The notes under the pieces are model-generated. The model was not told the DNA's origin. It did not search any database and was given only the letters and a program-made list of their open reading frames with translations. A stretch of DNA of 64,000 nt from Styela clava. Its lineage: Eukaryota. The translations under genes and the position numbers were made by a program. Shown here piece after piece: positions 1,956-53,764 of this stretch; position 1 is the first letter of the stretch, and each line of letters begins with the position of its first letter. The stretch is from contig NC_135259.1 of assembly GCF_964204865.1 (NCBI RefSeq), positions 2,170,001 to 2,234,000 of the forward strand, given 5' to 3'.

Positions 1956-4333
1956 TTAAACAAATGGATTATTCAGACCTATGTAAGCAAAGCTTGGGCA
2001 CGCATTTACTCTAGTGGGCACGAGCTGCCCGTCAGTGTTATTTTTATGTTGAATGCTAGTTGAAACCAGTTTCTTTCCCATCATTGTTAAATCATACATT
2101 TTAGCCATACAAAACTTTACATGGTCGGGTTCACCATTAAAAGATTTGTTTAGACATCTTAATAACCTAGAATATATTAATGAAAATTGAAAATTCAATG
2201 TTGATGCCAATGTGCCCCGAACATATGTAAAATGGTTCGGATTTGATACAATCGGCCAAACACCGTCTTCAAAAAATGTTATTGTACTACCCGCGTAACA
2301 GTATTTCCAAGGAGACTGCAATGTCTTACACCATTTGGATATGTTCAAACATTCGTAGTAATCTAGAACGTCATTATCTCTAATTTTAATCAACTTGCGA
2401 CCGTGAATTATTTCTTGAAAACGATAATAGTGTGACAACGTGGAGGAGACATTTTCGTCATCAAAATCTTCAAATGGCGAGCAGGATGAACCTCCTTCTC
2501 CTTCATAGACAATCTCTATTATTGACCGAAGAGCAGATGACAGATCGGTCACTTCAAAAATAACTTCAGATATTTTGTCTAAATTTGGCGTAGACGTGCA
2601 TACACCACTATCATTAAGCGTCATATTACTCGATGATGCACTTAGAACTTCATTTCCATGAGCCTCTCCAAGTGGCGGAAAAGTCCCCATCGTTTGAGAT
2701 ACAGATTCAGCAGCACATTGTCTACTCTCAGCAGTGGACGCTCTTTTATACCAGTGCCTTGAATTCATTTGTTTCTTGGTATCTCCGGTGAATATGGTCG
2801 AGGTGACGTTTCGATTAGATTTGCTATCATAATCAGGTTCCCCAAGTACTCGGAGTTTTACACAAGATTCCAGCTGAGCCAGTTTTAAGGCTATCTTTGC
2901 ATAAAAGCCACCGACAGTATGCAAGTCCTCGTCATCAATTTGAGCCAGTTTTGAAGTAGCGAAGTCTCTTATATTTGTCCAAATTTTTTCTGTTGTAATA
3001 TGTTCTTTGCTCGTCGATGCTCCGCTCATTTCTTCATTCGAGTTCACTGAATGTTTCTTTTGTCCTTTACTCTCTTCATTTCTTAGAAATTTTCTCAGTA
3101 ATGCAGATAATCTTAAATTTCTTTCTGGTGATGAGTTTGTACGTTTTTCTGTTTCTGAAACCAATTTCCAAAGTGTAGCAATGTGACCGAGGAGCTGCAA
3201 AATATGATTTGACAATTGTCTACTTATCATCACAAATTTCCGCGACAGACTGGTGCATAGAAAATAATCCTCACTTAAAACATTGCCCATCACAGGCGAT
3301 ATATATATACACAGATATGTATATATATATTATAGATTAGAAGGTATAAATGAGGAAACTTCTCTCTATAATCTAGCAGCTGAATCTTATTATTTAATTC
3401 TGACGTTGAGTTTATTGGTGAAAATATCATGTACAAGTATACCTGTTTTTTTACCTTCGACCAATGCATACAATCAATTATTCGCACCTAAACTTTTACC
3501 TTTTTGCCTCTGTCATTGACGGGACGTTCAATAGCCGAGAAAATGTCCTTAACTGTTCCGATTGACATTGGTCCTAACGATAATACATTTCCTCTCGCAA
3601 GCCCGTAAATACCTCCCAGAGTTGGTGTTAAAGGATAACTCGGATTGTGAGATGTAAATTTAGGAATGCCTCCAATCTATTAACATATATAGTGTATTAC
3701 TGAAATTATGCATTGTGAGAAGTTCTATACGAAAGGGAATGCAGTGAATGATATTTACGGAATATGATTAGTTGTCAATTTGAAGAATGTATATATATCG
3801 CTGTTTCACAATGTTGATGGAGCACACAGTACTTCTTTTATGTTGGGATTTTCAACTCCATTTTTGCAATAATCCAAATTGCCCAAAGATCAATCTATTA
3901 TATAGTTTTTTCAGAATTTATCACTTTAATTGTAGTAGCTGATACACGAGAGAGAAGCTGGTCAGTTTTGGTCAGCTTCGAAAAACTATTGATAAATGAT
4001 TATGAAAAGAGATATTAGCAAATGAAATTACTGGATAAATAAATATGATCAATGAATATATTTGATATTTTAACTTGTAAGTGTACCGACATACCGAGTT
4101 TAAAAGATTACTGGCAAGAACCATGTGTCTCATCTCATCATTGACGGTTTTTTTCAAAATGTCCGCCACCTCTTTATTTCGACCACGCTCCCATTTTATA
4201 CTGAGCCAGGCCGTCAGATACGGCGGTATGACCGCAAACTCGAGGAAAAGTGCGTTATGTATATCCAGCTTCAGCTTTTCAATTTCTTCTTCAAGTGCTT
4301 TACTACTACATATGTTCTTTGAGATTTTTTTTA
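1956..4333 (-). CDS. Ferritin-like (PF12902-type) C-terminal region of the VioB-like gene (exons 14-16)
   Basis: LEFAVIPPYLTA, EMRH, IERP, EGEG and SHYYRF motifs, typical of VioB/RebD-associated ferritin-like domains. Confidence 0.85.
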
Positions 4334-7300
4334 CTGAAATAAAAAATGCCAAAAATATCAAAAGTTTTATCTTTTATCAAATATATATTTTTCTTTCTGT
4401 AAAATTGCATTTGATTGATTGACATTTTGACGTTATATTGCACCATAAATATTTACAGTAATATTAATATTTTTTCTACATCAGGTAACAACTCTATGTT
4501 TAGATGGGATTAGTTAAACAATTTTGTTTCAGTTGCATATGTATTGAAGATTATGAAAAGGAGGGGAGCATATGCAAATATAGTATTAGGTGGTTTTTTA
4601 AATTTATACTATAACCACAAAAATGTGTATTTCCAAATATAACATTTACTCTCGATTTTGTTTCTAAAACACTCTTTGATAAAGGATTGAGTAATTACAT
4701 CATCATCACATTACCTTTTTGAGATTTACCTTCTTTCATGCCACATTTCATCCAATTCCAAATCAAACGTCTTTTACTGTAGGATAAATCGCGCTGTGTC
4801 GGCATGAACCTGAATAGATAATGAAGCAAAGTAGTTTTTAGTTGAAGTTACATTTGTACGCAGCGAACCAGCAGATACAGTCGCTATTTGTGGATGGTTC
4901 GAGCAATCTATTTTGCAACTTAACTTTATTCACTGGTTACTTTACTATACTTTCAATATTTGAAACAGTATATAATCTGCTCAATATACACTTATTATTT
5001 TATCGTTTTGGGTCATCCTGTACAATCGTATTGTTGTACTGTGTTCGTGAGCTGACAATAAAGACATTGCCTCGTTAAAGTGCCTGACAGACTGGGGAAT
5101 TAGTGCAGGCGCTACAGTTTCCATTTGTCGTCTTTGTTCGTGAGCTGACAATAAAGACATTGCCTCGTTAAAGTGCCTGACAGACTGGGGAATTAGTGCA
5201 GGTGCTACAGTTTCCATTTGTCGTCTTCTGACGACAGAGGAAACGTCTTCCTCCAAACAACAAATAAAACCCAAAAGATATTTTCTAGGCTACAACTGCA
5301 CCGATATATACATTACCAGGATTCGATTTGATTTGGCATTTGAAAAAGATTTACGAGCGAGAATGGACTATTTTATTTTCTGCCTTCAAAAATATTTCTC
5401 GTTCCAAATCATGAGCATGTTTTGGACAATAATCTCTGCTAGTGCTGTCTGATCAACAAGGTCAGTGGGAAATGAACGATGACCTCATGGGTTTCGAGAA
5501 CTGGTGTACGAGTAGGAATGTGGTATGCTTTTAAACCAACTCATATAATGTTTATGAACATTTGTTGCACATGTCATGTAACTTTTCTATGAAACAGAAA
5601 TTTCCTAGGGTTCCTACCTAGGGTTCTCCATATCGTACTCGAACATTGCCATTTTCAAAATGCGAGCTTTTGCTTTGACGTCTTCATAAGAATTCGTGTC
5701 GATTATCTTGTTTTTCCACATAACAGGATACAAATTATAATAAAGACGGAAAATATCTGTGATAATTATGGGGCATGTTTTTAAAACGTAAAAGGGGTAT
5801 TTCGTTTCTATTGTTTTTTCCAATTAAATTCAAATTATGGTAGAATAAAAAAGCTCGCGGTATAGTCTTACAACTTTATTGATTAACATTCCACTGAAAA
5901 AGTCACATACGAATAACATTTGTAGACATTTGTCAACATTTACCTTTTATATCCTGCCAAGTCGGACATTCGACATTTTCGACCTCATCATAAACCCTAG
6001 CAGCGATTGGTATAGAAGTAATATCAATATGGGATCCAGTGACTTCTTCATTTGAACCCTCTTCAAAAACATACGAGTGAGACTCGGTGCTGTGTCTAAT
6101 TTAAAAAATAAGAGTGAATCGATCGAAATCTGGTAGACTCGCTCTACATAATGTGGACATAATCAAAAATTTGAATGCAGAATAGTGAAAGAAACTTAGT
6201 AAAGAAAATAGAGAAGCTATGGAGATATTAGATGAATTTTTTATTGAATCCAAATCAGGTACTTCAGATGAGATGAAAATCTAGCGACATACCAACAAGA
6301 ACTGACTTTGAAAGTCTTGAACTACGCCTTTTTTCGGTGGTAATGAAGCTACATAAATGTGGCCCACTGTGCCAAAGGTGGCATGTCATGAGCTCGATCA
6401 TGGCACATGAATAATTTGGTGAAAAGTAATTCTTGTATTCATGATAAATCATATAACTCACGTTATATCGAAATAAACTTAAACTGTTCATTTAAACATT
6501 GCTATCTCGTAGCTGTGTTATCATTAATGAAAATAATATGTAAGTACACCAGACTACAGTAGCGAACGGTTAGGTAGATAAAACGTAATTTTCCTATTTA
6601 GCGTATATCGCAATATAGAGCAACTGCTCAAAATAGTCATGTGCATGTCGATGATTTGGAAATTGTAATGTATCATGGGTGTAACACACGAGCATCACAC
6701 TCAATCAAACACTGTGCTGAGGTAAAGGTAACGTTGGGGACTAAATCGTGACTATAGTAACGTGGTATAAAACACCCATTTTCATAAACTAGAACAATTT
6801 CTACTAGAGCTCAGATATTTAGGCGGTAAAATTTACCTTACTAAGATTTGTAAGGGATAAATCTGCCCATCTAATCCACATTGTCTTGGGGATCCGGGTG
6901 AGCGAACGCCATACATGTCAAAGTCAACGATTCCAGTTGAATTAGTAAACGGTTTTGTCCCAACAGGTGTTATTGAGAGAGCTGCCTCTGGCCATCCTAA
7001 AGTGCTGTGAATATTCATGAAACTGAATTTAATATTTAGAGAAAGAAATAGGTATAAACAGGTCCTACACAAAACATGTGTTTTCCTCCTAATCAGTGCA
7101 GCGAATTGTACTATCGGGGTTTATGTGATAATCTCTGTGAGATGCCTAAGTCTAAATTTAATCCATTGCCCTTGCAGTTTTTCATTAAATTTTTCAGCGT
7201 TAAATACAAATTATTATTTAAGAAAAGCTAAATTGTCGATATATATATCTTTATTTGTGTGTTTTTATCCAACGAGTTGAACAATTCGTGGATGTTTGAA

Positions 7301-10300
7301 GAAAAACATTCTTGGGATCGAAAACGTTTTCAGCAAAGGATTTTTACATAGTTCACAAAACGTGAGTTAGATGGTATTTTAGATTAAAGTCATTTTGTAA
7401 AATACTTTTTTAACGCATTATGCAATACATTTTTGAATTTTGTTTCTCATACCTGTTACAATGGAATGGACAAGCTCCCATTTTAATATGCTTCAAAGAT
7501 TTAACATTCACTTGTGATGCTGCAGACGGCATACCGAATCTGCTAACAAAAACTGATAAACGTTGTCTCTCACCCGGATTTATTCTGTGGACAGCTGGTC
7601 CCATAATACCGATATGCATACCAAACTTAGATTCCGTTAGTAATAGGTTCCAAGGTCTGTAGAAATGTTTGAATGTTATAAAAAATGGTTAGCCCTTTTC
7701 GCTGTATACATATTACTCCGAAATTTCGTATGACTTAATAAATATTTAGGTTGTACAATATTATAGCCTGTTTCATTTCATTCGAAGAGATACTATAGTA
7801 TATACTACTATATTGCTAAATATATATATAATATCGTCACGCTAATACCCGAATTGCGTAAGTCATTTTTAGCAGTTTTGAGAAAAACGTGAAAAACTTC
7901 CTAATGATATTGTTATGCCATTGAGAGTCAATAATTTGCCATGGTTCAATTTTTTTTTATCGTAGCCGGATTTAAGTTAATTTGTTTGACGCAGTTAAGT
8001 GACGTGATAATGGCGCACTGTGACTTAGGCAGAAATGTGTCTATGACTTGGGGACATACGCAATTATGCAACTTTAATATATGCACCAGTCCTGAAAACT
8101 AAACATTCCAAAAACGAATGTAATTCTCAGTATCTACTATGTCTAATCCCCAAAATAGCTAATCAGTTTCAATTACATTATTTTTTATGTTTAAAAGTAT
8201 ATATTTTATCAATATAACACGTTCTGCACACCCATCGAAATAAGACTAAGATTTAATATAAAGAATAAAACAGCAATGCACCCAATATAAAAGCCAACCA
8301 AAGTAAATTGGACTCGGTCGGACAGTGAATATCACAAGTGCACGTCTTCCCATACTGTAGTATAAATTCAAATTAATACGCGCTAAGCTAGAATCCGAGA
8401 TGCAAAAACTCGAAAATACTCCGCCGAGATTATTTTGCTTTTGTCACAATAGTCATGCGGTAACAATGATGATTCATTATGACAAAACAATTGCACAAAT
8501 GTGCATGTCATACTAAATCTCCATTTTTATAGGTTTCGGAATTTCTAAAATAAAATTTGAGTTAATAGACAGGTGCGCAGCATTACATAAATACCTATTT
8601 TATAAAAAACTCAAAATCGCCAAAAATGACTTACGCAATTCGGTTATTAGCGTGACGATATATAAGTATACTTATATATAAATATAAGTAAATAAATTGC
8701 CTATTTCTCCTGGAACATACTTGCTATCAGGATTTTTGTTTGACACAAGAACCAGTTGATTTTGCCGTAACAACTTCATCATTTTGTCGTCAACGTCTTT
8801 CAGACTTATATCAAAAACTCCGCCAAGCTTTTCATACCAATCAGCGCCTGCATTAATTCGCCTTGAAATCTCCCCATTGGTTGTCAAAAGATGCAAAGTT
8901 GTCCTGTCGGGTTCGTAATTCTTCAAACATAGCTCCGGAGACCAATAATATCTTTATACAAGTCGTCAAATTTGAAATGAAATAATTACAAAATCGAGCA
9001 CAAGTAAGTCAAATGTATATAACATAGTTATAATAATACCCCATTGATTACGCCACTATTATCACAGTCGTGGTTAATTACAGACATCTAGAATGCTTTT
9101 TGGCATTTATTTCACAAAAATCCTCACCTACAGGCATCTTTTGACTTAACTAGCACTCCAATATCAACAATCTTAGTTGTTTTAAATATTCCGAACTTAT
9201 CACATGTGATTGCGTTTGACATATCCATAGTCAAATACTTCTCTTTATAATGAACGAAAAACGGAGCAAAACCGACATTTTTCCAGCTATCTGCCCTAAT
9301 GACTCGTGTTGCGACTGTTTGAACCGGATCGTCATTTGACGTTAACCCTGAAATGCATCATTGAAATGCTAAAGGTATATTATTAACAAATAACCAAGTA
9401 CAGGGAACAAATAAATAGCATATATTCTTTGATTACATATTGGCGATATATTATAGAATAAAGATCAGGAAAATAAATACAGAGCGTAAAGTAGCAAACT
9501 AACAACAACATCGGGATCTTCACAATGTACGCACATTTGGGTATAACACACTAGCATGCTATATCCCGACAGAGTCAAATTATCATGACAAACCCATTGC
9601 CAATATAATATCGACATGCAGTGTGCTATGAATTGTTCCTGCATGATTCTGAATAACAGAAGATTAAACATTTGAAATATCCTGATAAAATGTTGCACTT
9701 ACCTATTGTTCCAGTTATTCGCCCCCGGGTGAGATCGAATCTAAACTGATCCAGAACAAATGAGATCGACAGCTCTGTGACGTTATTAAACATATGCTTG
9801 TAATGATTGCTGAACCATTTGATATTTGATAACCTACTGTATAAAAACAAAAAACAGTTGGAACAACGAATTACATTTAAATTTTTTTGTCCTGAAACAT
9901 ATTATTTTATCAGATGGAAATTTGATTTTCCAGGAAAGATTCTATGTTATATAAATCGTGAACACTGTAAAACTACTGATGTTGCCTGCTGTTAAAATAG
10001 TACTGCCATGTTACGGCTACTACTCTGAAATTATAAATGGACACTGTGCTACGACATAGTCTATCGCAATCCCCTGTATATATTTATATATCCCAGGCTT
10101 GTTACAAAATACAATGTACAACATGTACGAAAGAAGGTATTATGAATCGTTATCACATTCCCTTATTGCTTTAACATGATTGTTAATTGGTGAATACAGT
10201 CGGAGACATATGTAGCATAATAACACAAAATTAACATAATTTGGATGAATATCCAGGCGATTCCAAGCAGAATGTTTGACGAACCACAAAGTTTTTTTTT

Positions 10301-13300
10301 TGCAACCGAACAAATACGAGAAAAACGTATATAGCATACACACTGATGTAACACCAATGAATACAACAATGAATTATCTAGAAGAATACAGTGAACATGT
10401 GTGAACTATCATATCTGAGAACACCAAGAGGTAAATTGCGCCGGTAATTAAATTGAGTACTGTAATTTATAATGTAGTTCGATTAAACCGTTGCATTTTG
10501 AGGGTACTTTGCATTTGATGAGGACATTTGTACCATAAGTAGGTAAGAATACTTTGGTGATACAGAAATCTCTATTTTGAAAGTCTTTGAAAGTAAAAGA
10601 TGCACGCATTATAAATATTATTGTGATATTTGATCCCCTTAACACTATGCAAACCTAATAATATGTATTGTCTAAATTTTGTAGACATTTGCAAATACTC
10701 GTGTCAAAGTCAAAACAATATTGATTGTATGAAGAGTTATGTGTGTGTAGTATGAAAGTGTATGTTTGTTAAGTGTAAGTTTTAACAATTTGAGTAGTTT
10801 GCTTTAGCTTGAATTCATCTTTTTCAGGAAATATGTTCGGTCAGCTCATCACAAATTTTTCGACCAATGATTAAATTCTGTTATACACAAAAATATCGAA
10901 CAACAAGAGTCAATTTTTGCAATATTCGTGGATGTCATGTTACCTTTTATAAGTTGTGCTTTTGCTCACATCACCAGAACTCCCAGCTAATCGTTTCCTC
11001 ATCTTCCTCATCGAAACTCTGGAATATTTCGCTTCCAGTATCCTTGGTATGATTATCGTGAAACCCCATATTTCAGATGCCTGTTGCCAATCAGGATCCA
11101 AGTCTACAATTACTGCCATTTCAGTTTCTGTTTGACGATAATTGTGGCGGTCATTAATTAACGTTTTATTAGCGCAGTCTATTAGGTGCAAAAAAATCGC
11201 TAGCGGGATAGAAGTTATACACATATTTATTTGTTGTTACACCAAATTTGTAGTAAAACTCGAGAGTGTTTTATTTATAATAAATAATTTGTTACATAGG
11301 AATTGATAGTCACGATATCGGACATTAATTAAAATTCTGATTGCATGTTTTGATTATTTGTTCAATACTTAATTTCAAAGGGAAAATTGCCGGGTTTCTC
11401 GTACCAAAAATGACAAAATGGAGCGTAGGGATTAATCAAATACAACCCACCACGGATTTTCATGTTGACTATTTTATCTGTCGTTGAACATTTCCCAGGT
11501 TTTTTGCAAATCGATGTCACTTTTGTATCGATAAAATACAAATGACCGCTGCCATCGGGATTCCAATTTCCGATCTGTTGAAGATAGAATTTTAAAATTC
11601 ATGTGGAGCCTGAAACTCTTGGGGGGTAAGACATATAATCTCAATGTAAGGAGTTCCATAGTGTGATCTCATGTTAAAACTATGTATTTCTCAATCGATG
11701 ATCGATATTTTTTTTTTATCTAGTCTTTAATCTTTGAGGTTATGTACGTGTTTGGAGTATTATAATCAAACATTTCCTTGTTCATCATTACTTGAGATTG
11801 CGAAATTATAAAATATCGCCACGCTATACCCCCGGTTTTTAACTAGCGGGCCATGGATAACTGCTGGGCCACAGAAACATTTGAGGTGGGCCACAAACCT
11901 ATAGAATATTTCTATTAGTATTGAAAAATTTGGTCTGATTTACGTCACTATGGTTAGATTTTAATTGTGGTAGCAATGAACGGTACTCTTTTTCATTCTA
12001 ATTATTAAGGTGAAAGTGTTTATTTTTGCGAAAGGAGATTTTATTTTACTTGTAGTTTATACCTTGCATAAAAAAGTTAATGTGTAACAGAATATTTAGG
12101 CTAAGAAAATGGGCCACGAAAAAAAATAAGATTGAGAACCAATGCGCTCGTCGATTAATGGCAAAAAATGACAGTGCTAATTGAACATTTAATCACAAAT
12201 CCTTCACTGTGCGTTCAAAAAACTGGAAGTTTACTGGAAGTTTTTGATAACTCGAACTCCGAGGAATCCAGCTGGTAATGACTATTTCATGCTTTGACAA
12301 AACTTTGTATGTGAGCTTTCATGCACCCGCACCAGCTACCATTCCATGTCGGTGGGAAAAGTGAACTACTTATTCGTTTCAGATGCATGGATGGTGGAGA
12401 TGTTGATCTGAAGATGATCTAAAGATTGGACATGTTTGGAGTACGATAACTAGTATCAGACTCTTAAATTACTTATGACAAGCAAGTTCAACACTTTTCT
12501 ACAATTATCTACCCCCCATCTCCAAATATTGGTTTAATACTCTATACGTTTACATTCCAAATGAAAATACGGCTAGGAATCCTCTAGAATTTTGGATAGC
12601 TAGGATACAAGTTTTACTTACGTTTTTCGAAGCGGAGGCAGTAAGAAACTGTTTTGTGTCATAGTTACATCGATTGTTATTCACGGTTGATACATCTAAT
12701 ACTAGTTTTCCATGAAAATGAATTCGCGGCCATGAAAGATAGCCTGCATTAAAAAGACATTCTAATTTAATTTTTTTGATTTTAGTAAAAATTGCGTTCA
12801 TGCATGTTTTTACTACATGAGTCAGCTCATGACGTTGATTTCGTCTTTCATTCATGCACTGACATCACGCAATCAATCGAACACCTAAGGAAGTAAACTT
12901 AACTTATATCAATATAAATTCTTGATTGCTTTAGGTAATTGTCCCCTTTTTCCGTTTCCTTTTTCTATAATTTTTACCAAGATCTGTTTTTAATATTTGC
13001 GTACAAAACATCTTCCTTATATGCTTTCATTGAATAGAACAGTGCTATAGGTGTATATAACAGGGTTCAAACCATAATATGCTAAAAAATGAACAATCCA
13101 ACATCGCGATCCCCTTTTCCAGTCAAAATGCTACAGGTATTTCGAATAGCAGTGGGTCTTTAAAGTTCGTTAATTAATTTTAATTGTTAAAACGGAAAAA
13201 AGATGAATAATTACTTGGACAAAACTGGAACATGCAAGGTCGCTGTTCTTCTTTGGTCACTTTGCAGAATGATGTGGGATATTTGCAGGTTTTTCTCCAT

Positions 13301-13872
13301 CTAGTTTGAGATCCGCGTCCACACGTCACACTGCAAGAAGACCACTGGGTCCATGAAGGTTCTATTGGATTAAATAGAAATATTCTCAAGCTCCGAAAAC
13401 GTAGTCTGTTGTTTATAGTTTAAATTAACCTTTCCAGAAAGGATACAACTGATGTTCTCGATTTACGATAATCTGTCAATACTAATATCAAGTCCATTCG
13501 CCGACTTGGACTAGGAAAATGTTCGTTTAGTTTCAGTCGATATCATACACAGAGAAAGCGACAAAACTGGCCTCCGTTGTCATTTGTGACTTCCATATCA
13601 GAAAGCCATACTATTTGTGCTTGTATTTTTGAAACAACTACCATAAAAACTCTCGCGAGCTACTCGCGAAAAGATAATTTTTTTTTACGTTCAACCTCGA
13701 CATTATTTCTGAAAAGAGTCCCATTATTAAATTGCTGTGACATTAGAACTGACCAGAAACGGTCTCGTTCTGTAGTAAGCATAGTGTAAATTTAATATTA
13801 CTTACCAAGAACAGAAGCCGTGCAAATTATTGGAAATAAAACCAGACAAAGCAGAAACGACGATGAATTCAT
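1956..13872 (-). CDS. Secreted TSP1 + VioB/RebD/StaD-like (chromopyrrolic acid / imino-arylpyruvate dimer synthase family) protein with C-terminal ferritin-like domain; 16 coding exons, ~1213 aa
   Basis: Manual model with all GT-AG introns, consistent phases and no internal stop. Exons: 13872-13806, 13361-13215, 12743-12622, 11574-11451, 11127-10944, 9836-9703, 9347-9128, 8951-8721, 7656-7453, 7004-6837, 6095-5944, 5756-5618, 4809-4715, 4333-4095, 3676-3500, 3194-1956 (3642 nt). Motifs occur in the order I recall for bacterial VioB-like proteins: SYLSWPRIHFHG..DVSTVNN, WNPDGSG, VIVDLDPDWQQASEIWG, LSISFVLD..GRITGTIG, PGSPR..LDGQIY, PTWQDIKDIF..YYNLYPVM, PRFMPTQRDLS..KR..IWNW. The ferritin-like part follows: LEFAVIPPYLTAWLSI, DEMRHM..NLLNSIGG, FSAIERP, TVGGFY, VTDLSSA..EGEG, SHYYRFQEI, FNGEP. 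Confidence 0.85.
5043..5226. repeat. Tandem duplication of a ~93-bp unit in intron 12; possibly a LINE 3'-end remnant
   Basis: Two near-identical copies starting at 5043 and 5136. The minus-strand translation ALIPQSVRHFN resembles the C-terminus of LINE ORF2 (weak). Confidence 0.7.
7832..8660. mobile_element. MITE with ~40-bp TIRs in a TA-rich site (Tc1/mariner-like), intron 8 of the VioB-like gene
   Basis: TATCGTCACGCTAATACCCGAATTGCGTAAGTCATTTTT ... AAAAATGACTTACGCAATTCGGTTATTAGCGTGACGATA. Confidence 0.8.
13215..13361 (-). CDS. Thrombospondin type-1 repeat exon (phase 1-1)
   Basis: WTQWSSCSVTCGRGSQTRWR..C..C..EEQRPC..C canonical TSP1 motif, bounded by AG and GT. Confidence 0.9.
13806..13872 (-). 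CDS. Signal-peptide exon of the VioB-like gene (MNSSSFLLCLVLFPIICTASVL)
   Basis: ATG at 13872, hydrophobic core, and a phase-1 GTAAG donor. A TTTTTAG acceptor about 14 nt upstream of the ATG suggests a 5'UTR intron or a trans-splice site. Confidence 0.7.
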
Positions 13873-14015
13873 TTGTTTATTATCTTCTAAAAATATCAAA
13901 TAAAAGAAGATAACAATACGAATGAATATTCAACTGACAATGCAACTATCTGTTTTATTGCATAATGGGTGTCACAGATGTTAAATTTGGCATTGCAATG
14001 ACGACATCGAAAAGA

Positions 14016-14322
14016 CGAGAATATCGGTCAGAGACCAAAGACTTATCGATCGAAAGTCAGGGGATCCCCCAAAACAGCGCTCTTACTCCATAGTGACACC
14101 TTGTGTCCCATCACTAATTAATTAATAACTCGCTAATTATACGACATAATTCATCTAAAATCAATAGGATTCTGTTCTGACATATGATGAATGCACAAGC
14201 AAAATCTGGAGCAGATTCAATCTCGCTTTCGTGAGATATCGCGTGCATCTAACAGACAAACAGACAGACAAGCAGACAAATACCTATCAACATACTTACC
14301 GATTAAAATCGATAAGTGATAA
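14016..14322. mobile_element. Interspersed ~300-bp repeat (SINE/MITE-like), copy 1
   Basis: Highly similar to 40897-41211, including the AAAC/AGAC microsatellite. Confidence 0.75.
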
Positions 14323-14423
14323 GGTTAAAAGTGTTGTGGCCTGATATTGGCTGAGACCTGCTATCAGAGATCAGGGGTTACGTGAAACAAACTACTGCAT
14401 ACCTTACCTTGGCGTATACTATT

Positions 14424-14540
14424 ATATTTAATTCAAGAGTCTCGCTGCACACTAACACAAATGTATTTCTGCATTGGGTCAGACGAAACGTTACAGAAAT
14501 ATATTTGTGTTAGTGCGCAGCGTAAATTTTGAATCAAATA
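14424..14540. repeat. Imperfect hairpin (small MITE-like element)
   Basis: GCTGCACACTAACACAAATGTATTTCTG ... CAGAAATATATTTGTGTTAGTGCGCAGC inverted arms. Confidence 0.6.
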
Positions 14541-15417
14541 CAAACTATATATTTATTAAATATAACAAGATTCCACACTGTAAAATTGAGTACTATTGCT
14601 CCCATCACTAACCCTGCAAGTTGAAAAAATTACATCAATATCATCGTGATAACATCCTAACATAAGTGGGGATTGAAATTGCTAAATAAATGCACTTCCA
14701 CTTGAACATCTTTTGTTCAGTAGAGTCGTTATTAAAAACAAAAGATACAATCAAAAGGTTTGTTTTTAGTCATTCTCGAAAAATGGTTAGTCATTTCGAA
14801 CATTTCGAGTCATTTCGAATTATTAAAAAAGCTAATGCTAATGTGTTTGAATGAAACAGCAAAAGAAGGTGTATATAGATTTTAGTTCAACACTGACTAT
14901 CCGACTATATACTGGTGTAATGCGAATTTCGCAAGAAATGGTAAAAGCAAAATTATAAAAAAAATGTAGAACTAGTTTGTGGTACAGTCGTTTGTTTGCT
15001 TTGTACAAAAACTTATTTGCATAATATACATAACATGCCTAAATTGACAAATCTTTTTCTATCTATTTCTCAGATACACAAAACTTATTATAAATTGATG
15101 GCTGTATCTTTCCCACAGAATAGTACATTATTATCTGCATGTATCGGGTGACTCACGTTTATGGCAATTGAAATGGTTTTTATAATGGCGGAATTGGCGT
15201 GATGTTCTAAACGAGACACGCGTCAACTTCTATAAAGCGACGTATTGTTGCTAGGAATACAGATATACTCCGAATTCTATATGCTCCTGACGTGGATAAC
15301 ATAAATAAATTGACCGACATGATTTGAAACACGGAGCGAGGACAACTGAACAAAACTCTATTTTACATAAATCACGCATATTTACTTAAAAAATGTCAGT
15401 TTGCTAATCAGTTAGCA

Positions 15418-22579: not shown

Positions 22580-25331
22580 AGTGGCGAGCACCTACCGGTA
22601 TTCCGGTTAAGTCGTACTGCTGCAAATTGACGAGCAAGCGCCAGGATTGGAAAGTCACACGATTTTTTGATAAAAAGTTCATGATGTCACACCGAAGAAA
22701 GAATTGCGACCTTGAACGCACGAAAATATGGGATAAAATTGTTGAGATGGAAACCGAAAACAAAGAAATTAAAAACACAAATAAAGAAATTGAAGTTAAA
22801 AATAAATCACTGGAAGCTGAAAAAAAGAACTGGCTAGACAACTGCAAGATGCTTTGTCTCAACTGAAAGTAGACAAGACCAGTGTTATACAACTTGAAGA
22901 AAGAGATTTTGGCATGAAGGAAGCACTCGAACGAGTGATATGCCGTCTGGAGAGCATTGATGAGGCCATGGCTGAGGGTGAGGTGCCATCATTTATTCAT
23001 AAACCTATTTTGAAAACAAACCCTTGAGGTGCCTAAGAGTGTTGATAAGAATGGTGAACCAGACTGCTCTGATAATGAATGTTTGATAGATGGTACCGGT
23101 ACTATTAAAAAATTGAATTTTGCTGATGAGTGTGTGGTTGACCAGTCTACACCTATGTATGCAAGTGTGAATAGTAATATTACTGATTGCAACGCAGTTC
23201 CTTTTGGTATGAATCATAGTATGAGAATTGATATACAGCCTGATACTTTTAATGGTGATGGTATGTCTTTGGATGATTATTTGTGTCATTTTTCATCCAT
23301 TACTACCTGTAATGGATGGACTGATAAAATCGCTGGTGTACACTTTGCTGCATGTATGCGTGGGAAGGCTTTGTCCTTGTTGAATGAATTATTCCTTTCA
23401 TATAGGCACAGTTTGAGTGTTGCAGTGAATCACTTGAAAAAGCGTTATTATCCAGACGGTAGGGAGTCATACTTTGCTACTTGTTTAATAACAGGAAGAA
23501 GTTGGCCACTGAGACGTCAACGGAATATGCTACTTCTCTTCGTGCATTGTCAAGGAAGGCTTATCCTTCTTTGGATGTTATTGCTTGTGAGAATCTGATT
23601 AAGCAGCGTTTCATTTCAGGTTTTCCTGATTTCGAGATGTGTAAGACTTTGACCATCAGGCAGACTCAGAGTTTGGATGAATTAATTACTGTGGCTGATG
23701 TTTGTCATTCTATTGATGCTACGCACAGTGCACCTGGTTGTAATCGTGATAGTAAGCCCATGGTAGCTGTTGTGAATAATTCTGACTGTGATGATGGTGT
23801 GTGTGAATCTGACTTTAGTAAGCTGCGGAATGATATTAGGGAGATGCTTGACTGTTTCCGTGCCATGTTTGACAAAGGTCATCAACCCCGATTTTCCCGT
23901 CAGACGGGTGGGCGTAGGAATAAAGGTATTACTTGTTATGGTTGTGGTGCCAAGGGTCACATACGTAGGAATTGCCCGGAGAACCTGTGCCAGAGATGTC
24001 ATGGCAGAGGTCATATAGCTTCTCAGTGTGATAGATATTATGTTCCACAGAATTCGCAGCCTTCTACTGCGTATTCGGCCCAGCAAATGGCCAATGGCTC
24101 AGTAGGAAATTTTTCAGCAGGGAATAGCTCAAATTCTGCCTGTGGTGGGAATGGCCAAACTCGTGAGAGTGGGAATATTTCCCAGTTTCACCCTGCTCTC
24201 AAGAATATTGATATGCCTTTAAACAGAAATCAGTAGCACGGGGGTCCTCAGCTGCTACTGGAAAAATGACGAATTTATGCAAGGACCAAGACTTTGATAA
24301 TTTGATTTGTTCTTTAAGATTACCCACTAGCTGGTATGCTATGGTGGATGTGGATGGCATTACCGTACGTTTTCGTATTGATTCTGGTAGCGCTGCTACG
24401 CTTATAGATTATGCAGTTTTTTGTTCTATTGGTGGAAAGGAGTGTGATTTGTCTCCTTGTGACGTTTGTTTTCAAAGTGCTAATGGAACTTCTCTGAAAG
24501 CTCGTGGTATGATTGACTTGAAAGTTTGTATTGATTCTGTGTGTGCTGTTCAGAGAGTGATTGTTGCTGATCTCCGTGCCCCCTATGGTTTGCTTGGTAT
24601 GGATTATTTCCAAAAGCATGACTGTGTTTTGCATATGTCTGTAGGTCAAATGGAAGTTGATGGTAAAACTGTTTCCCTGACTAAGCCTGTTTCGTCTGTT
24701 CCTAGTTGTAGAATTGTTGTAGATAAATGTGTGACTGTTCCCAGAGAGAGTGAGATGGTGATTTATGGTCGTTTGAATTGCCCGTGGACATCCAATAGTT
24801 AGGTCACAGCTGTGGCAGAAGCTGCGTGTGTGTTTGAGAGCGAGTATGGACATCGTGGTTTATTTTTATTCCTTGGAGTGGTGGCCGCCTCATGCTCTCT
24901 AGTGCCTCTCATGGTGATCAATGTTAGCAAGGAAGCGGGAGAAATACCTGCGGATTTGCTGATCGGTTTACTATGCCCAAGAGAAAACCTGACTGTCTCT
25001 TCTCTGGAACAAGTGGTGCTGGGTGATGTCATGGACACCAGGGAACTACCTTAAACATTTAAAGAAGCTCGTCGACGACCCAGAAGATTTAACGGAAGAA
25101 CAACGTCACCGTGTTCATGATTTGCTTGTCGAATTTCAGGACGTTTTTGCTGGTCCTGATGAAAAACTGGGACAAACTTCTGTAGTCAAACATAAGATTA
25201 AAACGTCAACATCTGAAGCTTTTGAATTTGCTCGAGAACAGTTAGGTAAATCTGCTGTTCGACAGAAACGTAATTTCAATGCAACTATTAAGCCTTTATC
25301 TTTTAATGTTGGTGATCTTGTGTGGTATTTT
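22580..25331 (+). mobile_element. Decayed Gypsy retrotransposon: gag (two CCHC knuckles), aspartic protease and an internally deleted pol
   Basis: Gag 23029-24236 with a frameshift near 23480; CYGCGAKGHIRRNC and CQRCHGRGHIASQC; protease FRIDSGSAATLI (24266-24802). The pre-RT linker LGQTSVVKHKIKT is joined directly to the integrase C-terminus RQKRNFN..FNVGDLVWY. Confidence 0.85.
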
Positions 25332-28300
25332 CAGCTTGGGCATTTCCTCTTGGCCATAACGGAGTTTTTTCTGATGATGAATTCCACAGTAGTCAATGAA
25401 TCTTTCAAATCCGTGTCCTTGAAATAGTGTTCCATTATTTGTCTTGAGCACTTCACAAAATCCAGGTGTAGCAAATATTTTGTCAAAAATTGGAACCACA
25501 CTGCCAGCTGATTTTTTATGTAGTCTTCCACCATTGAGTCAATATTAGGGAACCACAATTTTGCTCTAATCAATGCTTTTGTTTCAGCAACTCCTTGATG
25601 TCCCTCATGTGCTATGGAGATCATTTGTCATCTTCACAGGAACTACATGAGGAACTACTACTCTCATGTGCTATGGAGACCTTTCTCATCTTTACAAGAT
25701 GTCACAATACAATGTCCACGAAGAATCATGCCTTGTTCAGTTATGCTCAATTCACTAAATAAACTTTCAAAATTTCGCATTTATTCACGGTTTCGATAAT
25801 CTTGCCGTTTTCCAGAAACATTACACTTCTTCACATTTTGCATCACGGGGTCATTGAAAGTCTCTCCTTCTATTTCTTTCTGTGCGATAGCTTTTGGACA
25901 AGCACTTTCACACACATAGTTCAGAAATTCTTCTGCAATTTTCAGATCACGGTTATTCTCTGCTTTCGATGGATGACGTGACAAATAATCTGCTGGATTA
26001 TTCGCTCCGGGTCTGTATATTACAGCATAATCATATTACTGTAGCTGTAAACACCATCTTTCTATTCTAACAGACGGCTTTGCAGTGACATTCAAAAATA
26101 TACTAATCAGAGGTCTGTGGTCAGTAATAACATTGAATTTTACTCCATATAGGTACAAGTGAAAATGTTCAACTTCTCAACGAACAGCCAGTGCTTCACG
26201 TTCGATTTGAGAGTAACGAGTTTTTACGTCATCAAGACTTCTTGATGCATAGGCAACAACTTGTACTTTTCCACTTTTTGAGCTTCTTTGTGTCAAAATT
26301 GCTCCTATTCCCAATGATGATCCATCTACAATTAATTCAGTCTTTAGATCAGGATCAAAATATGACATAATGGTGTCAATTGTTAATTTTTTCAACTTCA
26401 ACCAGGCACTTTCACATTCATCACTACAGATGAAATCAGAATTTTTATTTGTCAATTCCCTCAGTGGCTTCACATGGATTGCTGAATCTTCAACGAATCT
26501 TGAAAGATATCGTGCCATCCCCAACAAAAACTTCACTTGTGATTTATCTGTAGGTCTCAAAGCTTCTTTGAGTGCTTTAAATTTTTTTGGATCAGGAGAC
26601 ACTCCACGTTCACCAAAAATATTACCATAGAACTCCATATATGATTTAAAAAACTCACATTTTCTTTAATTCATCTTAAGACCATTTTTTGACTCGGTAT
26701 AAGCATGCTCTGATATGCTTCTCGTGATCAGCATAATTTTTGCTAAAAATATAGATGTCATCAGAAATATTCTTCACGCCTTCTAGTCTTTGAAGAACTT
26801 GTTCAATTATGAATTGGAATTTTTAGTCGCTGCATTCACCCCGAAATTGAGACGATTATGTCTATGAATCCCAAGGTGTGTACTAAACGTTGTAATATAT
26901 CTGCTGTCTAGGTGTAACTCTATTTGATGATATCCTCGGTTTAAATCGAATTTTGAAAATACCTTGCATCCATTCAAGTCGTGAATTAGTTCATCCATTG
27001 CTGGCATTTGAAGGTTCACCCTTTTGATAGCTTTATTCGCAGCTCTCATATCCGTGCACAATCGGATATTATCAGGATCACTGGATTTTGGTACCGCAAC
27101 TATAGGAGATACCCACGGAGTTGGTGTGTTATCTTCACAGATATCCTTTTCATATAGTCCTTTAATTGCTTTTTCCACTTAGGTTCTGGTTTTAAATGTT
27201 ATTCTTCTGTGTTTTTGATGTACTGGATCCACAAAGTCATCGATGTTCAGCTTTAATTGGTATCCTTTGAGCTTTCCGACACCATGACATATACTATCAT
27301 ACTCTGATAGAATTTCCTTTGTACGCTTTTCTCGTTCATTTTCAATGGAATATATAATCTCCAGTATTCCGAGTTGTTTTGCTGTGCCATTAGACATTAA
27401 ACAACCTGTGGCATGTTTTGTTACATAAAAATCATCTGACAGTTGGTGGCCACCATTTGACATTCCGTTTGCAGCAAATTTGCCAATTTACTGCAGTGGT
27501 TTTTCACTACCATAAGCAAATAACTTTGTATCAGCAGGACATAGTGAGTGCAACATTTGGAAGTATTCCTCCGTATTTCTTGATACGCTTTGTTGTCTAG
27601 GATATTAACACTAGAACCACTGTCAACAATAAAACAGCATTTAATCCCATTAACATTCAATTCAACTGTTGGAAGCTTTCTAGAAATCTGAATTTGTTCA
27701 ACCTTGATTGAGTATTCAGAATTTTCACAACTTTGAGATTCAACTTTAATTATGTTGCTTGAGCTTGATTTCAAATTATTAAGTGAGTGTGAAAACTCCT
27801 TTTGTTTTGGCGCCCTACAAAACTTTGCAAAATGACCACAATCATTGCACTTGAAACATTTTCGCCCCTTAGCTGGACACTGACCTTTGTGTGGTAACGA
27901 GCCGCCACAATAAAAACAAATTTTTACTGAGTAATTGTTTTTCTTGCGTGTTTTGTTTCGGTTCACTGATTTGATCCGATGCGCATTTTTCTTGTGCAGT
28001 TTCTTCAGTGTTTCCTTCCATCACAGACAAGTGGGATTTTGCAAGTTCAATTGCTTTACCAGTGTCGGATAGGGATTTTGAATCCATCTTTTTGCTTAAA
28101 GATTTTTTCTATAATTCAGACGATTTGCATCCCTGAATTATTTGAATTTGATTTCACTTTTCCGGGATCGAACTCACAGGTTACTGCCATTTTCTTAAGT
28201 CGTGTACAAAATTGATCGAGTGACTCACATTCATTTTGTTTTGCGAAACAGATGAATTTCGTACTCGCTATTGGCTTTAGGGGCAAAATATTACGTCAAG

Positions 28301-37644: not shown

Positions 37645-40600
37645 GTATTGCCAGAGCAAACTTGGAAGTTTCGGGTAAGTGATTATAATTTACCCTGAAA
37701 GACCATATAGATATGCGCTGCGGGTACTATTACTCATCCTTCTTCTATGTGCCTGTAGATTCGTATACATATAATAAAAGGAAACTATTTATAGCAAGAT
37801 TAGAGATAACTATTCTAACTGTTTTCTGACTATAGTTAAATTATGTATGTCTGAGGAAGTTACAGAAACGTTACAGTAATATATTTGTGTTAGTGTTAAA
37901 TCATTTAGAAGCAACTTTTGAATACATGACTAGAAAATTAGATGGTAGATGTAGAGAGCCTTCTTCATCAATTTTTTTCGATGTGAAACGTTTACATGCC
38001 AAACTTTTATATTGTACCAATTTACCAAATCGTGTATGTTTTTGTTTTTGTTAATTTATTAAATATTTTAGATATATGTGTGGTTTTTATGTGATATTGA
38101 TCGAGACAGTACATACCTTCACTTCTGATTACGCATAACAACTTGATGCAAATCTGTTGTTTAAAATATTCCGAAAAAATCGCTTCTAAATTAAAAAATT
38201 CCGAGTTTTTGTAAATTTTCTCTAATTGTTTTTATTAAGACATTCGATTAACTGGTGGAAAAACCGAAAATCAAGGTTTTGTAGAAATTCTTTCTGGCGG
38301 AAGATGGGGTAGAATATGCGTCGACGACTGGGGAATCGAGGAGAGTGCAGTTGTCTGTCGCATGCTAAATTTTAATCGATTTGCTAACCTTTCCGTCGAT
38401 GCAACCGATCCTGGGACGCCTTTTGTTTATACCAATGGTTTGCAGTGTGTGGGTACGGAGACAAGACTGACCGATTGTACCATAGATTTATTAAAAACTT
38501 CTAGTTGCTCGATTGCAATAGTCAAGGTGTTTTGCTCAGGTGAGGTATTATAGTTTTAGCTGAATGACATAATAGAATACGTTTTAGCTGATTTAACGTA
38601 ATAGAATACAGGAAGTTAGGAATGAATCATTTGCCTTTCTAATCCTATCGTTCAGCGTTGAATAATAACAACAACACAACACGCAAATCCAAATCCCAGC
38701 GGAAAAAGCTGGTGAAAAAATAAACGAGAATATCAGTGTGAATTCTGGCTATTGCACATGACAGAATGTTGCAAGGTTATACGTATGGAGTTTTTTTCCT
38801 AAAAATGTAAAATCGTGCAATAATATTCTCCTGAAGAATTCACGGATGTGGAAAGCCTACGGATGTGAAAGCATTGCATCATGTTATAGTCATATCGTTT
38901 CAAAAGATTGCTATGTTTAATAGTAACACGTTTTTAAATTTTAGAAATAGAGGATGTTCGTTTGTCTGGCGGATACAAACCAAACCAGGGTTATGTTGAG
39001 GTTAAATCAGAGGGCAAATGGGGACAACTTTGTTCCGCAAACTGGGGAGACAATGAAACAGAAGCAGTTTGTCGCCAGGTCGGATTTCAGCGAATTGGGA
39101 AGTCTCTTAAAGCAAAAATACTGACAAAATCAATATTACCTATTTTTTTAAACAACATTACATGTGCCGGTGACGAAACGGAACTTAGATTTTGTAATCA
39201 TGGATTACTTGGCGAATCCAACTGCACGAACAAGGAAAATGTAACTATTGTATGTTCGGGTGGGTATTTAATATAAATATAAAAATATTTCAATAACTTT
39301 TTTCAATATTTTGTAGCACAAAATTGATGCGATTGCGACATAATATGATAATGACGTAGAAAAAATTTCTGCTTGTTAGAAACATTCTACTCACTAAATG
39401 GGTAATCTTATATGAACCACACAAGTCAATTATCTTCGCCGGAATTCGAAACCCTTGAGCATACGACTCAGTTGCATATTTGAAGGGCATTAAAGTATTG
39501 GTTGTCTTTTTTTGACTTCAGTTAGAAATTAGCTAAAATTCCAACTGATTCCTATGACTGTCGTTACATTGCGAAGTGTAAAAACACATCGCCAATTTTT
39601 TTCGTGGGCATAGGGTCGACTGATTTTTTTTCTATTCTAGAAATTGAAAACGTGCGATTGTCTGGAGGAGACAAAATCAATCAAGGATACGTTGAAGTTC
39701 AATCTGCTGGAGAATGGGGGAAAATTTGCAGCAAGAAGTGGAGTGCAAAAGAAACAAAAGCTGTTTGTCGACACCTCGGATACGAGAGAATTGCATTCAT
39801 CCACGCTATTACAGTAGATCAACCTGCATCTCCGGGTTTCTTAGATAACTTAGAATGCGCTGGAAACGAAACAAATTTGAGGGATTGTCAACATCAATCA
39901 ATTGGGTTTTCTAATTGTAGCGAAAACAAAGAAAATGTGACTATTGTTTGTTCCGGTAAGTATTCATTAAAACATTTTTACTATATTTATTTCTACAGTT
40001 GGATACACTCAAAAAAATTGAATTACGATTTATTGCTTATTTTCTATTTCACAGAGATTGAGGCAGTGCGGCTCAGAGGAGGTCGATCAAGAAATCAGGG
40101 ATTTGTGGAAATACTGTCGGAAGGGGAATGGGGATTGGTGTGCGACAATGATTGGGGGATGTTAAATAAGGAAGTGGTTTGTCGTCAACTTGGTTATTAC
40201 AGAGTGTCCTTACTACCAGTGGCAGCTACTCAACCAAATTCATCCGTATTCTTGGACAACATATCATGTACAGGGAAAGAGAATCATCTTAGAAACTGCA
40301 CGCACGGAAAACTCACTACGTCAAGCGACTGTACTAACAAGCAGTGGGCAAAAATTGTATGTACAGGTACAAGCTTTTTACTGATCACAACAACATTTAT
40401 TAATGGTAGCCTCGATTTTTCTTATTAGATCATACAGCTGACGATTAGACTTCTATGACGAGATGAATGCCTCAATGTTATTAAATTAAATTATTTGATT
40501 TAAAATTATTTGGTTCTATAAGTCTGAATGTTTTCAATGCCACAAATTTAACTAAAATTCTTATGCTCATCAGATTCGATCAGCGCTGGACCCGGCGTTG

Positions 40601-53300: not shown

Positions 53301-53764
53301 AGATATTCTGAACCTGGATAATTATTTCATACATTGCCGGTACGCTACACACATTTAAACTGATATGCCTTTGTGTGCCTTCTCATATGCATGTCCAAAT
53401 TTCCTTTTAGCTTGAACTTCGTTTTGCAAATCCTGCAGTGAAATCTCTTTTCGTTTGTATGCGTGATAGAATGTGTGGTCAAATGAGATTTGCGTCCAAA
53501 TTCCCGTTGACATATTTCACACTCGATTTTTTTTGAATGACTTTTCATATGATTGCAAAGAATCTTTCCTGGCTGCTTGGGAAAATGTGATCCTAAATGT
53601 TCTTGAAAATGCTCTTTGCGGGTATATCTCTTGTCACGAATTACACATTTATGTGGGCGTTCACCAGTATGTGTTATTTCGTGTCGCTTTAGGTTGCCTT
53701 TCTGTTTAAACACTTTACCACAGAAATTACATTCATGCAATCTGTCTACTTTGGTCTTCTCCAT
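50353..53764 (-). pseudogene. C2H2 zinc-finger gene (~270 aa) disrupted by an LTR element
   Basis: Two halves (53764-53350 and 50763-50353) with HTGEKPF/HTGERPH linkers. Removing the insert and one TSD copy restores in-frame ...YQFK-CEICGVGK... Confidence 0.85.
50764..53349 (+). mobile_element. Young non-autonomous LTR retroelement (LTRs 50764-51552 and 52561-53349; ~1-kb internal region with protease remnants)
   Basis: 789-bp TG...CA direct repeats; 4-bp TSD CACA; PBS-like TGGCGAGAGC just after the 5' LTR; PPT AGAAGAGGGGGG before the 3' LTR; internal FLIDTGAGV protease motif; no RT or integrase. Confidence 0.95.

Follow-up and report, generated by a model that had tools for sequence, protein, structure and literature searches.

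Gene structure at the locus

The 64,000-nucleotide stretch of the Styela clava genome analyzed here (NCBI RefSeq assembly GCF_964204865.1, contig NC_135259.1, positions 2,170,001–2,234,000; hereafter the window, from whose first letter all coordinates are counted) contains LOC120338016, a minus-strand gene of 16 coding exons (1956–13888) with a product of ~1200 residues. The product is a VioB-like enzyme whose body of ~900–1000 residues, a beta-rich N-terminal domain followed by the Ferritin-like domain PF12902, is collinear with bacterial members of the family. A putative signal-peptide exon and an exon encoding one thrombospondin type 1 repeat (TSR) are joined to the N-terminus of this body. 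We read and translated each exon singly from the window sequence, with the following layout.

13806–13888, minus strand: exon 1; 5' untranslated region 13888–13873, ATG at 13872; spliced contigs extend to 13888
13362–13805, minus strand: intron 1; phase 1, gt..ag, with the ag at 13363–13362
13215–13361, minus strand: exon 2; 147 nt, symmetric phase 1-1, one complete TSR; contig pieces over 13214–13361
12744–13214, minus strand: intron 2; phase 1, gt..ag, with the ag at 12745–12744
12622–12743, minus strand: exon 3; opens on a split Ser codon (A before the intron, GC after it) and ends in phase 0 before gtaagt
11451–11574, minus strand: exon 4; IGNWNPDGSGHLYF..., continuing the enzyme body
1956–11127, minus strand: exons 5–16; what is left of the beta-rich N-terminal domain, then Ferritin-like PF12902 at the C-terminus; stop codon 1956–1958

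Exon 1 codes for MNSSSFLLCLVLFPIICTASVL, has one further base that belongs to the following codon (phase 1), and is succeeded by gtaagt at 13805. Exon 2 translates to PSWTQWSSCSVTCGRGSQTRWRKTCKYPTSFCKVTKEEQRPCMFQFCP (48 residues, six cysteines) with one base left over before gtaatt. After the split serine, exon 3 continues YLSWPRIHFHGKLVLDVSTVNNNRCNY...; it opens S-Y-L-S-W-P-R-I-H-F-H-G, has no methionine at its start, and corresponds to residues 2 to ~42 of the bacterial proteins. The successive exon phases are 1, then 1-1, then 1 to 0, and the coordinates and phases given for these exons by the initial annotation of this stretch were exact when read from the sequence and translated. Pfam matches to PF12902 in the window lie at 3975–4361 and 1959–3293.

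Transcript and database evidence for the joined exons

Nine sequencing runs contained 6–29% of the sequence words in a 10-kb segment of the gene (21–29% in seven of them, approximately the exonic share), and four DNA-like runs contained 82–93% of the same words. Contigs of four runs from two studies (X1 and X2 from P1, X5 and X6 from P2) were aligned to window positions 8150–14100, and these runs were taken as transcripts because the contigs show canonical intron removal. Seven consecutive GT..AG joints link exons 1–8, with 13362–13805, 12744–13214, 11575–12621, 11128–11450, 9837–10943, ~9347–9701, and 8952–9127 skipped. Every skipped stretch ends CT..AC on the plus strand, which is GT..AG for the gene, and the reading frame is open through all eight exons. 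Record 14 of X6 spans exons 1 to 7, and record 10 of X5 spans exon 4 to beyond exon 1.

Both junctions proposed by the initial annotation were present in the spliced contigs. The first (13806>13361) appeared as the joint 13361/13806, which skips 444 nt with CT..AC ends on the plus strand in X2, X5, and X6 and has a variant alignment in X1. The second (13215>12743) appeared in 4/4 runs as the joint 12742/13214 (cut +1), which skips 471 nt. At the following joint, 11573/12622, one letter lies between the two sides. The initial annotation had held its reading to be incompatible with signal-peptide and TSR exons that form a separate gene, or with an enzyme that starts downstream of them; we looked for both in the contigs and saw neither, as none of the contigs from the four runs left out exon 2 or began between it and exon 3.

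Public gene models gave the same arrangement. With only the terminal exon as query, HMMER found 385 relatives, the best being S. clava XP_039261872.1 (LOC120338016, flagged LOW QUALITY). The current RefSeq model of the locus (P0188, LOC120338016 isoform X2), found by a word search with a Styela paralogue (paralogue B, below), is 1208 amino acids long and carries PF00090 and PF12902 (E 1.2e-33 for the latter). By tblastn it aligned to the window in 16 collinear blocks that extend from 13872 to 1959, with the same starting Met and N-terminus. Single exons of the window served as queries in our homology searches, and public models were used wherever whole proteins were compared. The signal-peptide exon and the phase 1-1 TSR exon are joined to the native N-terminus of the enzyme in frame in transcripts, with the same N-terminus in the RefSeq model, and this supports the core architecture first read from the sequence.

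Two codons vary among sources. At the first base of exon 4 (window 11574) the assembly encodes Ile and 4/4 RNA runs encode Phe; the older RefSeq model P0001, which reads FGNWNPDG at the start of exon 4, has Phe like the RNA runs. The last full codon of exon 1 (~13807–13809) is Leu in the assembly and Pro in the older RefSeq model. Both differences look allelic.

The thrombospondin repeat

Exon 2 matched Pfam TSP_1 (PF00090) with an E value of 6.3e-11 and 42.7 bits against a cut-off of 21.6. It contains WTQW, CSVTCGRG, TRWRK, and six cysteines, and so has the WxxW tryptophan layer, the RxR layer, and the CxxS/TCxxG motif of the fold. A PDB sequence search with the TSR of a Styela paralogue (paralogue B, below) matched thrombospondin-1 and F-spondin repeats. 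Exon 2 also has two properties of a class 1-1 module in the sense of Patthy: it is a single exon between phase-1 introns, as supported by RNA, and collinear homologues without the module exist in amphioxus, acorn worm, sponge, and bacteria.

The native N-terminus and bacterial relatives

A scan of bacterial species genomes (GTDB) found at least 566 loci, of which 80 were kept and 76 matched from query residue 1. In 72/76 of these the gene opens with ATG, GTG, or TTG followed by S-Y-L, in the motif S-Y-L-x-x-(P)-R-x-x-F-x-G, and in many of them an in-frame stop precedes the start codon by fewer than 10 codons. The initial annotation had given the bacterial start as MSxLxxPRxHF, and these loci bear it out. 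Many long homology matches likewise start M-S-Y-L-x-x-P-R-L-H-F, including metagenome-assembled genomes (MAGs) of Chloroflexota and Candidatus Angelobacter. Because the bacterial gene passes directly from its start codon to the S-Y-L motif, exon 3 starts at bacterial residue 2. The ascidian F-C-P-S-Y-L-S-W-P-R-I-H-F aligned over the bacterial M-S-Y-L-x-x-P-R-L-H-F, and intron 2 therefore falls within the codon for the first residue after the bacterial initiator Met. P7, R8, F11, G13, T21, and N23 were invariant from bacteria through animals, ascidians included.

The widespread, cytosolic bacterial "ferritin-like protein" family (e.g., the Terriglobia MAG protein L023/P0040 and the Chloroflexota MAG protein MEM7130273.1, P0027) has a body of ~900 residues that is collinear with the Styela protein end to end and shares its N-terminal motif, C-terminal PF12902, and invariant or near-invariant Glu and His residues of the ferritin-like domain. 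Unlike the Styela protein, the bacterial members have no signal peptide, TSR, or introns, and have few cysteines. In the AlphaFold model of a Ciona homologue (P0020, mean predicted local distance difference test score [pLDDT] 77.5), the N-terminal motif segment is the opening strand (pLDDT ~96) of the beta-rich N-terminal domain, and the TSR is an appendage modeled with lower confidence (pLDDT 49–69).

Conservation in ascidians and other animals

The S. clava genome contains five paralogues, each with a TSR exon 350–570 bp upstream of a YL(S/T)(W/F)PR exon. In all five the TSR exon ends with FCP and then A before the gt, and the next exon begins with G[CT] after the ag, producing the same Ser codon. 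The recurrence of the three-exon arrangement in five paralogues with identical phases and junction codons is far beyond chance. Phase-1 hydrophobic first exons were predicted for paralogues B, C, and D; the RefSeq model of B opens with exactly the predicted exon, and those of C and D have N-termini close to the predicted ones, a few substitutions apart. The same order of signal peptide, TSR, and enzyme was found in Ciona intestinalis (three genes) and Clavelina lepadiformis. All eight proteins from Styela, Ciona, and Clavelina kept WxxW, CxxS/TCxxG, and the junction C-P-S-Y-L, and 7/8 had the six TSR cysteines, with five in the TSR proper of paralogue D; cysteines were counted over all of the sequence that follows the signal peptide. 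Paralogue D (C13:11162739–11162855) has an extra Cys in the tail of its signal-peptide exon, and its six-frame Ferritin-like match contains stops that may be an intron.

No TSR was present in any non-ascidian member among the long matches. Homologues from amphioxus (Branchiostoma P0019, P0021, and P0013), acorn worm (Glandiceps talaboti XP_077992063.1), and sponge (Oscarella lobularis XP_065826386.1) have the same enzyme body, a signal-like N-terminus, many cysteines, and a place in the family clade, but lack the TSR, with the signal segment abutting the motif or separated from it by an unrelated linker. In amphioxus proteins the signal-like segment either runs straight into (G/A)-[YF]-P-R-L-H-F or is followed by a linker. 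In Glandiceps a short linker joins the signal segment to SYLDWPRLHF, and in Oscarella a linker of ~55 residues joins it to SYLNRPRIHF. One amphioxus model, Branchiostoma belcheri P0016 (KAI8489964.1), contains four LDLa repeats (Pfam E 2.4e-21) before the enzyme N-terminus, which would be either an independent second accretion of extracellular modules at the same site or a fused gene model.

We built quick maximum-likelihood trees with IQ-TREE, leaving out fragments <850 amino acids and near-duplicate isoforms. The TSR-bearing proteins formed one clade (SH-aLRT 100) that holds two old subfamilies, (Clavelina + Ciona3) and (Styela A–D + Ciona1/2), and is nested in a wider clade (support 95–98) that also takes in amphioxus and acorn-worm proteins lacking the TSR. 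The place of Oscarella, on a long branch, was uncertain, and the branch order of ascidian, amphioxus, and acorn-worm proteins comprised open forks.

Signal peptide and secretion

By inspection, exon 1 encodes MNSSS, a 12-residue hydrophobic core, and then the small residues T-A-S (T-A-S-V-L), with a Kyte-Doolittle maximum of 3.14 in a 9-residue window. The core is too short for a membrane anchor. Consensus motifs for C-mannosylation and POFUT2 O-fucosylation, both modifications that are resident in the endoplasmic reticulum (ER), are intact in the TSR of 8/8 ascidian proteins. Ascidian proteins contain 26–35 cysteines (2.2–2.8%) compared with 2–10 (0.2–1.1%) in bacterial ones, and 17 Cys columns of the enzyme body were kept in at least 7/8 ascidian proteins and in at most 1/11 bacterial proteins. 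Several of the 17 were also found in amphioxus and acorn worm. From the TSR glycosylation motifs, the hydrophobic N-termini across the animal family, and the cysteine signature, we infer that the protein is secreted. The initial annotation had already called it secreted, and this much of its claim has indirect support from these lines of evidence.

That claim had gone on to tether the protein to the matrix, which is plausible by analogy. In ADAMTS proteases, as in the Styela protein, a TSR module is combined with a secreted catalytic domain through phase-1 exon shuffling, and the TSRs anchor the enzyme to the matrix. Unlike ADAMTS, the Styela protein has a single TSR at the extreme N-terminus, ahead of a bacterial-type metalloenzyme. 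It is speculative that this TSR would localize the enzyme through contact with glycans or with matrix, be it the tunic, extracellular matrix, or microbial surfaces.

Identity of the enzyme

UniProt names the animal PF12902 proteins "Iminophenyl-pyruvate dimer synthase domain-containing". They share PF12902 with VioB, StaD, and RebD (iminophenyl-pyruvate dimer synthase, chromopyrrolic acid synthase), which are of similar size and have an N-terminal PRIHF-type motif. Unlike these enzymes, the animal proteins appear to be routed to the secretory pathway. For a body placed by its PF12902 membership, the safe label is VioB-like. NCBIfam had no matching model for the exons or the full proteins, a PDB sequence search returned no relative beyond the TSR matches, and a Foldseek search of the AlphaFold2 model against the PDB gave only meaningless multi-domain beta matches (TM ~0.09). 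Between bacteria and ascidians the Glu and His residues of the ferritin-like domain show little or no change, so a metal-dependent activity has probably been retained.

Two bacterial loci of the 80 kept were inspected, and neither had a vio-type cluster. At the Terriglobia MAG locus (L023:976–3738) the relative lies directly downstream of a 920-amino-acid multicopper-oxidase-like gene. In Chromobacterium aquaticum (L075:678–2372) it lies directly downstream of a BBE-type FAD oxidase with a redoxin downstream, and this copy of the gene is interrupted by a stop. The window had no amino-acid oxidase open reading frame (ORF) of at least 110 amino acids and no vio-like neighborhood. A pathway neighborhood with an L-Trp oxidase (VioA/StaO/RebO) and downstream genes was not seen at the two bacterial loci or in the window. 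The missing neighborhood argues weakly against similar chemistry, weakly because gene clustering is not expected in animals. We consider it a long shot that the TSR places a secreted VioB-like oxidase on tunic, matrix, or microbial surfaces, where it would couple amino-acid-derived imines or aryl pyruvates, for example from a secreted L-amino-acid oxidase. If true, ascidians would have an extracellular route of their own to bis-aryl or bis-indole products or cross-links that are now credited to symbionts.

Origin of the architecture

We assign a probability of roughly 0.85 to the explanation that the 5' end of LOC120338016 is a two-step graft onto a bacterial-type enzyme by which the protein is sent to the ER. 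The exon structure, splicing, homology, and conservation are as observed above; the steps that connect them are reconstructed. In the first step, a signal-peptide exon would have taken the place of the bacterial start codon, a state kept in sponge, acorn worm, and amphioxus. In the second, in the ascidian stem lineage, one symmetric 1-1 TSR exon would have entered between the signal-peptide exon and the enzyme; between phase-1 introns, such an exon would leave the frame and the S-Y-L-x-x-P-R-x-H-F strand unaffected. The protein would then enter the ER and lose its signal peptide by cleavage, with the mature form beginning almost at the TSR, and the enzyme body would have adapted to the oxidizing secretory pathway through many new conserved cysteines. 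The simplest history that the alignments and trees suggest is that the signal peptide preceded the TSR, which was inserted once, ahead of both the ascidian radiation and a gene duplication.

This modifies the initial annotation, which had a cytosolic bacterial enzyme converted into a secreted animal protein by exon shuffling. The graft itself stands. It was evidently made in two steps, as the signal peptide is common to sponge, acorn worm, and amphioxus and only the TSR is ascidian-specific; there was no direct step from bacterium to ascidian.

Several observations weigh against this explanation. The n-region of exon 1, MNSSS, has no positive charge, and the signal peptide was judged by inspection only. 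RefSeq predicts an isoform X2 of paralogue B (P0151/P0153) that starts at MIDLNVDF inside exon 5 and has neither signal peptide nor TSR nor the conserved first strand. The label RNA for the sequencing runs is a guess. One X1 contig has 95 unplaced letters beyond an acceptor-like site (tttttag/aag) at ~13888; the 30 letters shown of this 5' extension are absent from the window and the assembly at up to 2–3 mismatches and contain no in-frame ATG or stop, and the extension may be an unassembled or polymorphic 5' untranslated exon or a chimeric contig. Lastly, insertion of the TSR exon into a pre-existing phase-1 intron is suggested by the Styela paralogues and protein alignments only.

Among the alternatives, the one that survives best is unlikely but well within reach, and has the protein secretory without being matrix-tethered: it would be kept inside blood or tunic cells, in storage granules or vacuoles, or else its TSR would serve mainly as a POFUT2-dependent handle for folding and ER exit or as a microbe-binding module. 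The O-fucosylation and C-mannosylation motifs of all eight ascidian proteins are consistent with such roles, and the TSRs of properdin and spondins bind microbial or cell surfaces. This alternative departs from the two-step graft only at the last, speculative step.

It is improbable that the ancestral animal gene already had the TSR and that amphioxus, acorn worm, and sponge have lost it. The quick trees leave the order of the ascidian, amphioxus, and acorn-worm branches open, a symmetric 1-1 exon is as easily lost as gained, and the LDLa repeats of B. belcheri P0016 show that other modules occur at the same site. However, an ancestral TSR requires at least three independent losses in place of one gain, the long matches hold no non-ascidian member with a TSR, and the TSR-less members carry unrelated linkers, or none, at the junction. 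Least credible by far is a separate upstream gene for the signal-peptide and TSR exons (through read-through or assembly chimeras), or an enzyme with a downstream initiator Met: chimeras can occur among Logan contigs and the predicted paralogue B isoform does start inside exon 5, but the same in-frame canonical joints occur in four runs of two studies, the arrangement has identical phases in five paralogues and is kept in three ascidian genera, and a downstream start would remove the invariant PRxHFxG...TxNN strand from a protein whose exon 3 lacks an initial Met.

Novelty and significance

The initial annotation knew of no description of a signal peptide–TSR–VioB architecture. Our literature search likewise found no paper in which animals, thrombospondin, or these loci are connected with VioB or with the UniProt name, and the main text of a 2026 paper on horizontal transfer in tunicates had no mention of ferritin, violacein, or thrombospondin. 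The architecture does exist in RefSeq and UniProt, as uncharacterized proteins of Styela, Ciona, and Clavelina. We regard it as a clear case, so far undescribed in papers, of exon shuffling by which an enzyme of bacterial type comes to enter the secretory pathway.

As such it is a clean, residue-precise example of a bacterial-type cytosolic enzyme turned metazoan secretory protein, in which the individual steps are visible: the start codon gave way to a phase-1 signal-peptide exon, a TSR exon was slotted in, the first strand was kept, and cysteines were gained. The enzyme family is unstudied and has multiple copies in ascidians (five in Styela) and amphioxus, with members also in acorn worm and sponge. 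The architecture provides testable hints on the site of action, in extracellular or secretory compartments, and on the addition of the TSR before the ascidian radiation, and the Ciona orthologues are open to knock-out and reporter assays.

Other features of the window

The region upstream of LOC120338016 is repetitive. From ~14011–14100 and beyond, ~125 bp upstream of exon 1, lies the end of a young high-copy interspersed repeat; a first look found 762 candidate copies in the genome, and the 39 other copies that were scored are 91–99% identical. This repeat accounts for two features of the RNA runs, a contig depth that is very high and a variety of loose ends at 14015 and 14049. A hairpin at 14422–14542 matched several miRNA precursor models in Rfam on both strands, all far below gathering scores, and is probably a transposon inverted repeat. 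Elsewhere in the window are retrotransposon gag/pol-like ORFs on both strands (23029–27966), an ORF with two scavenger-receptor cysteine-rich-like repeats (39604–40428), and C2H2 zinc-finger ORFs (50353–53764).

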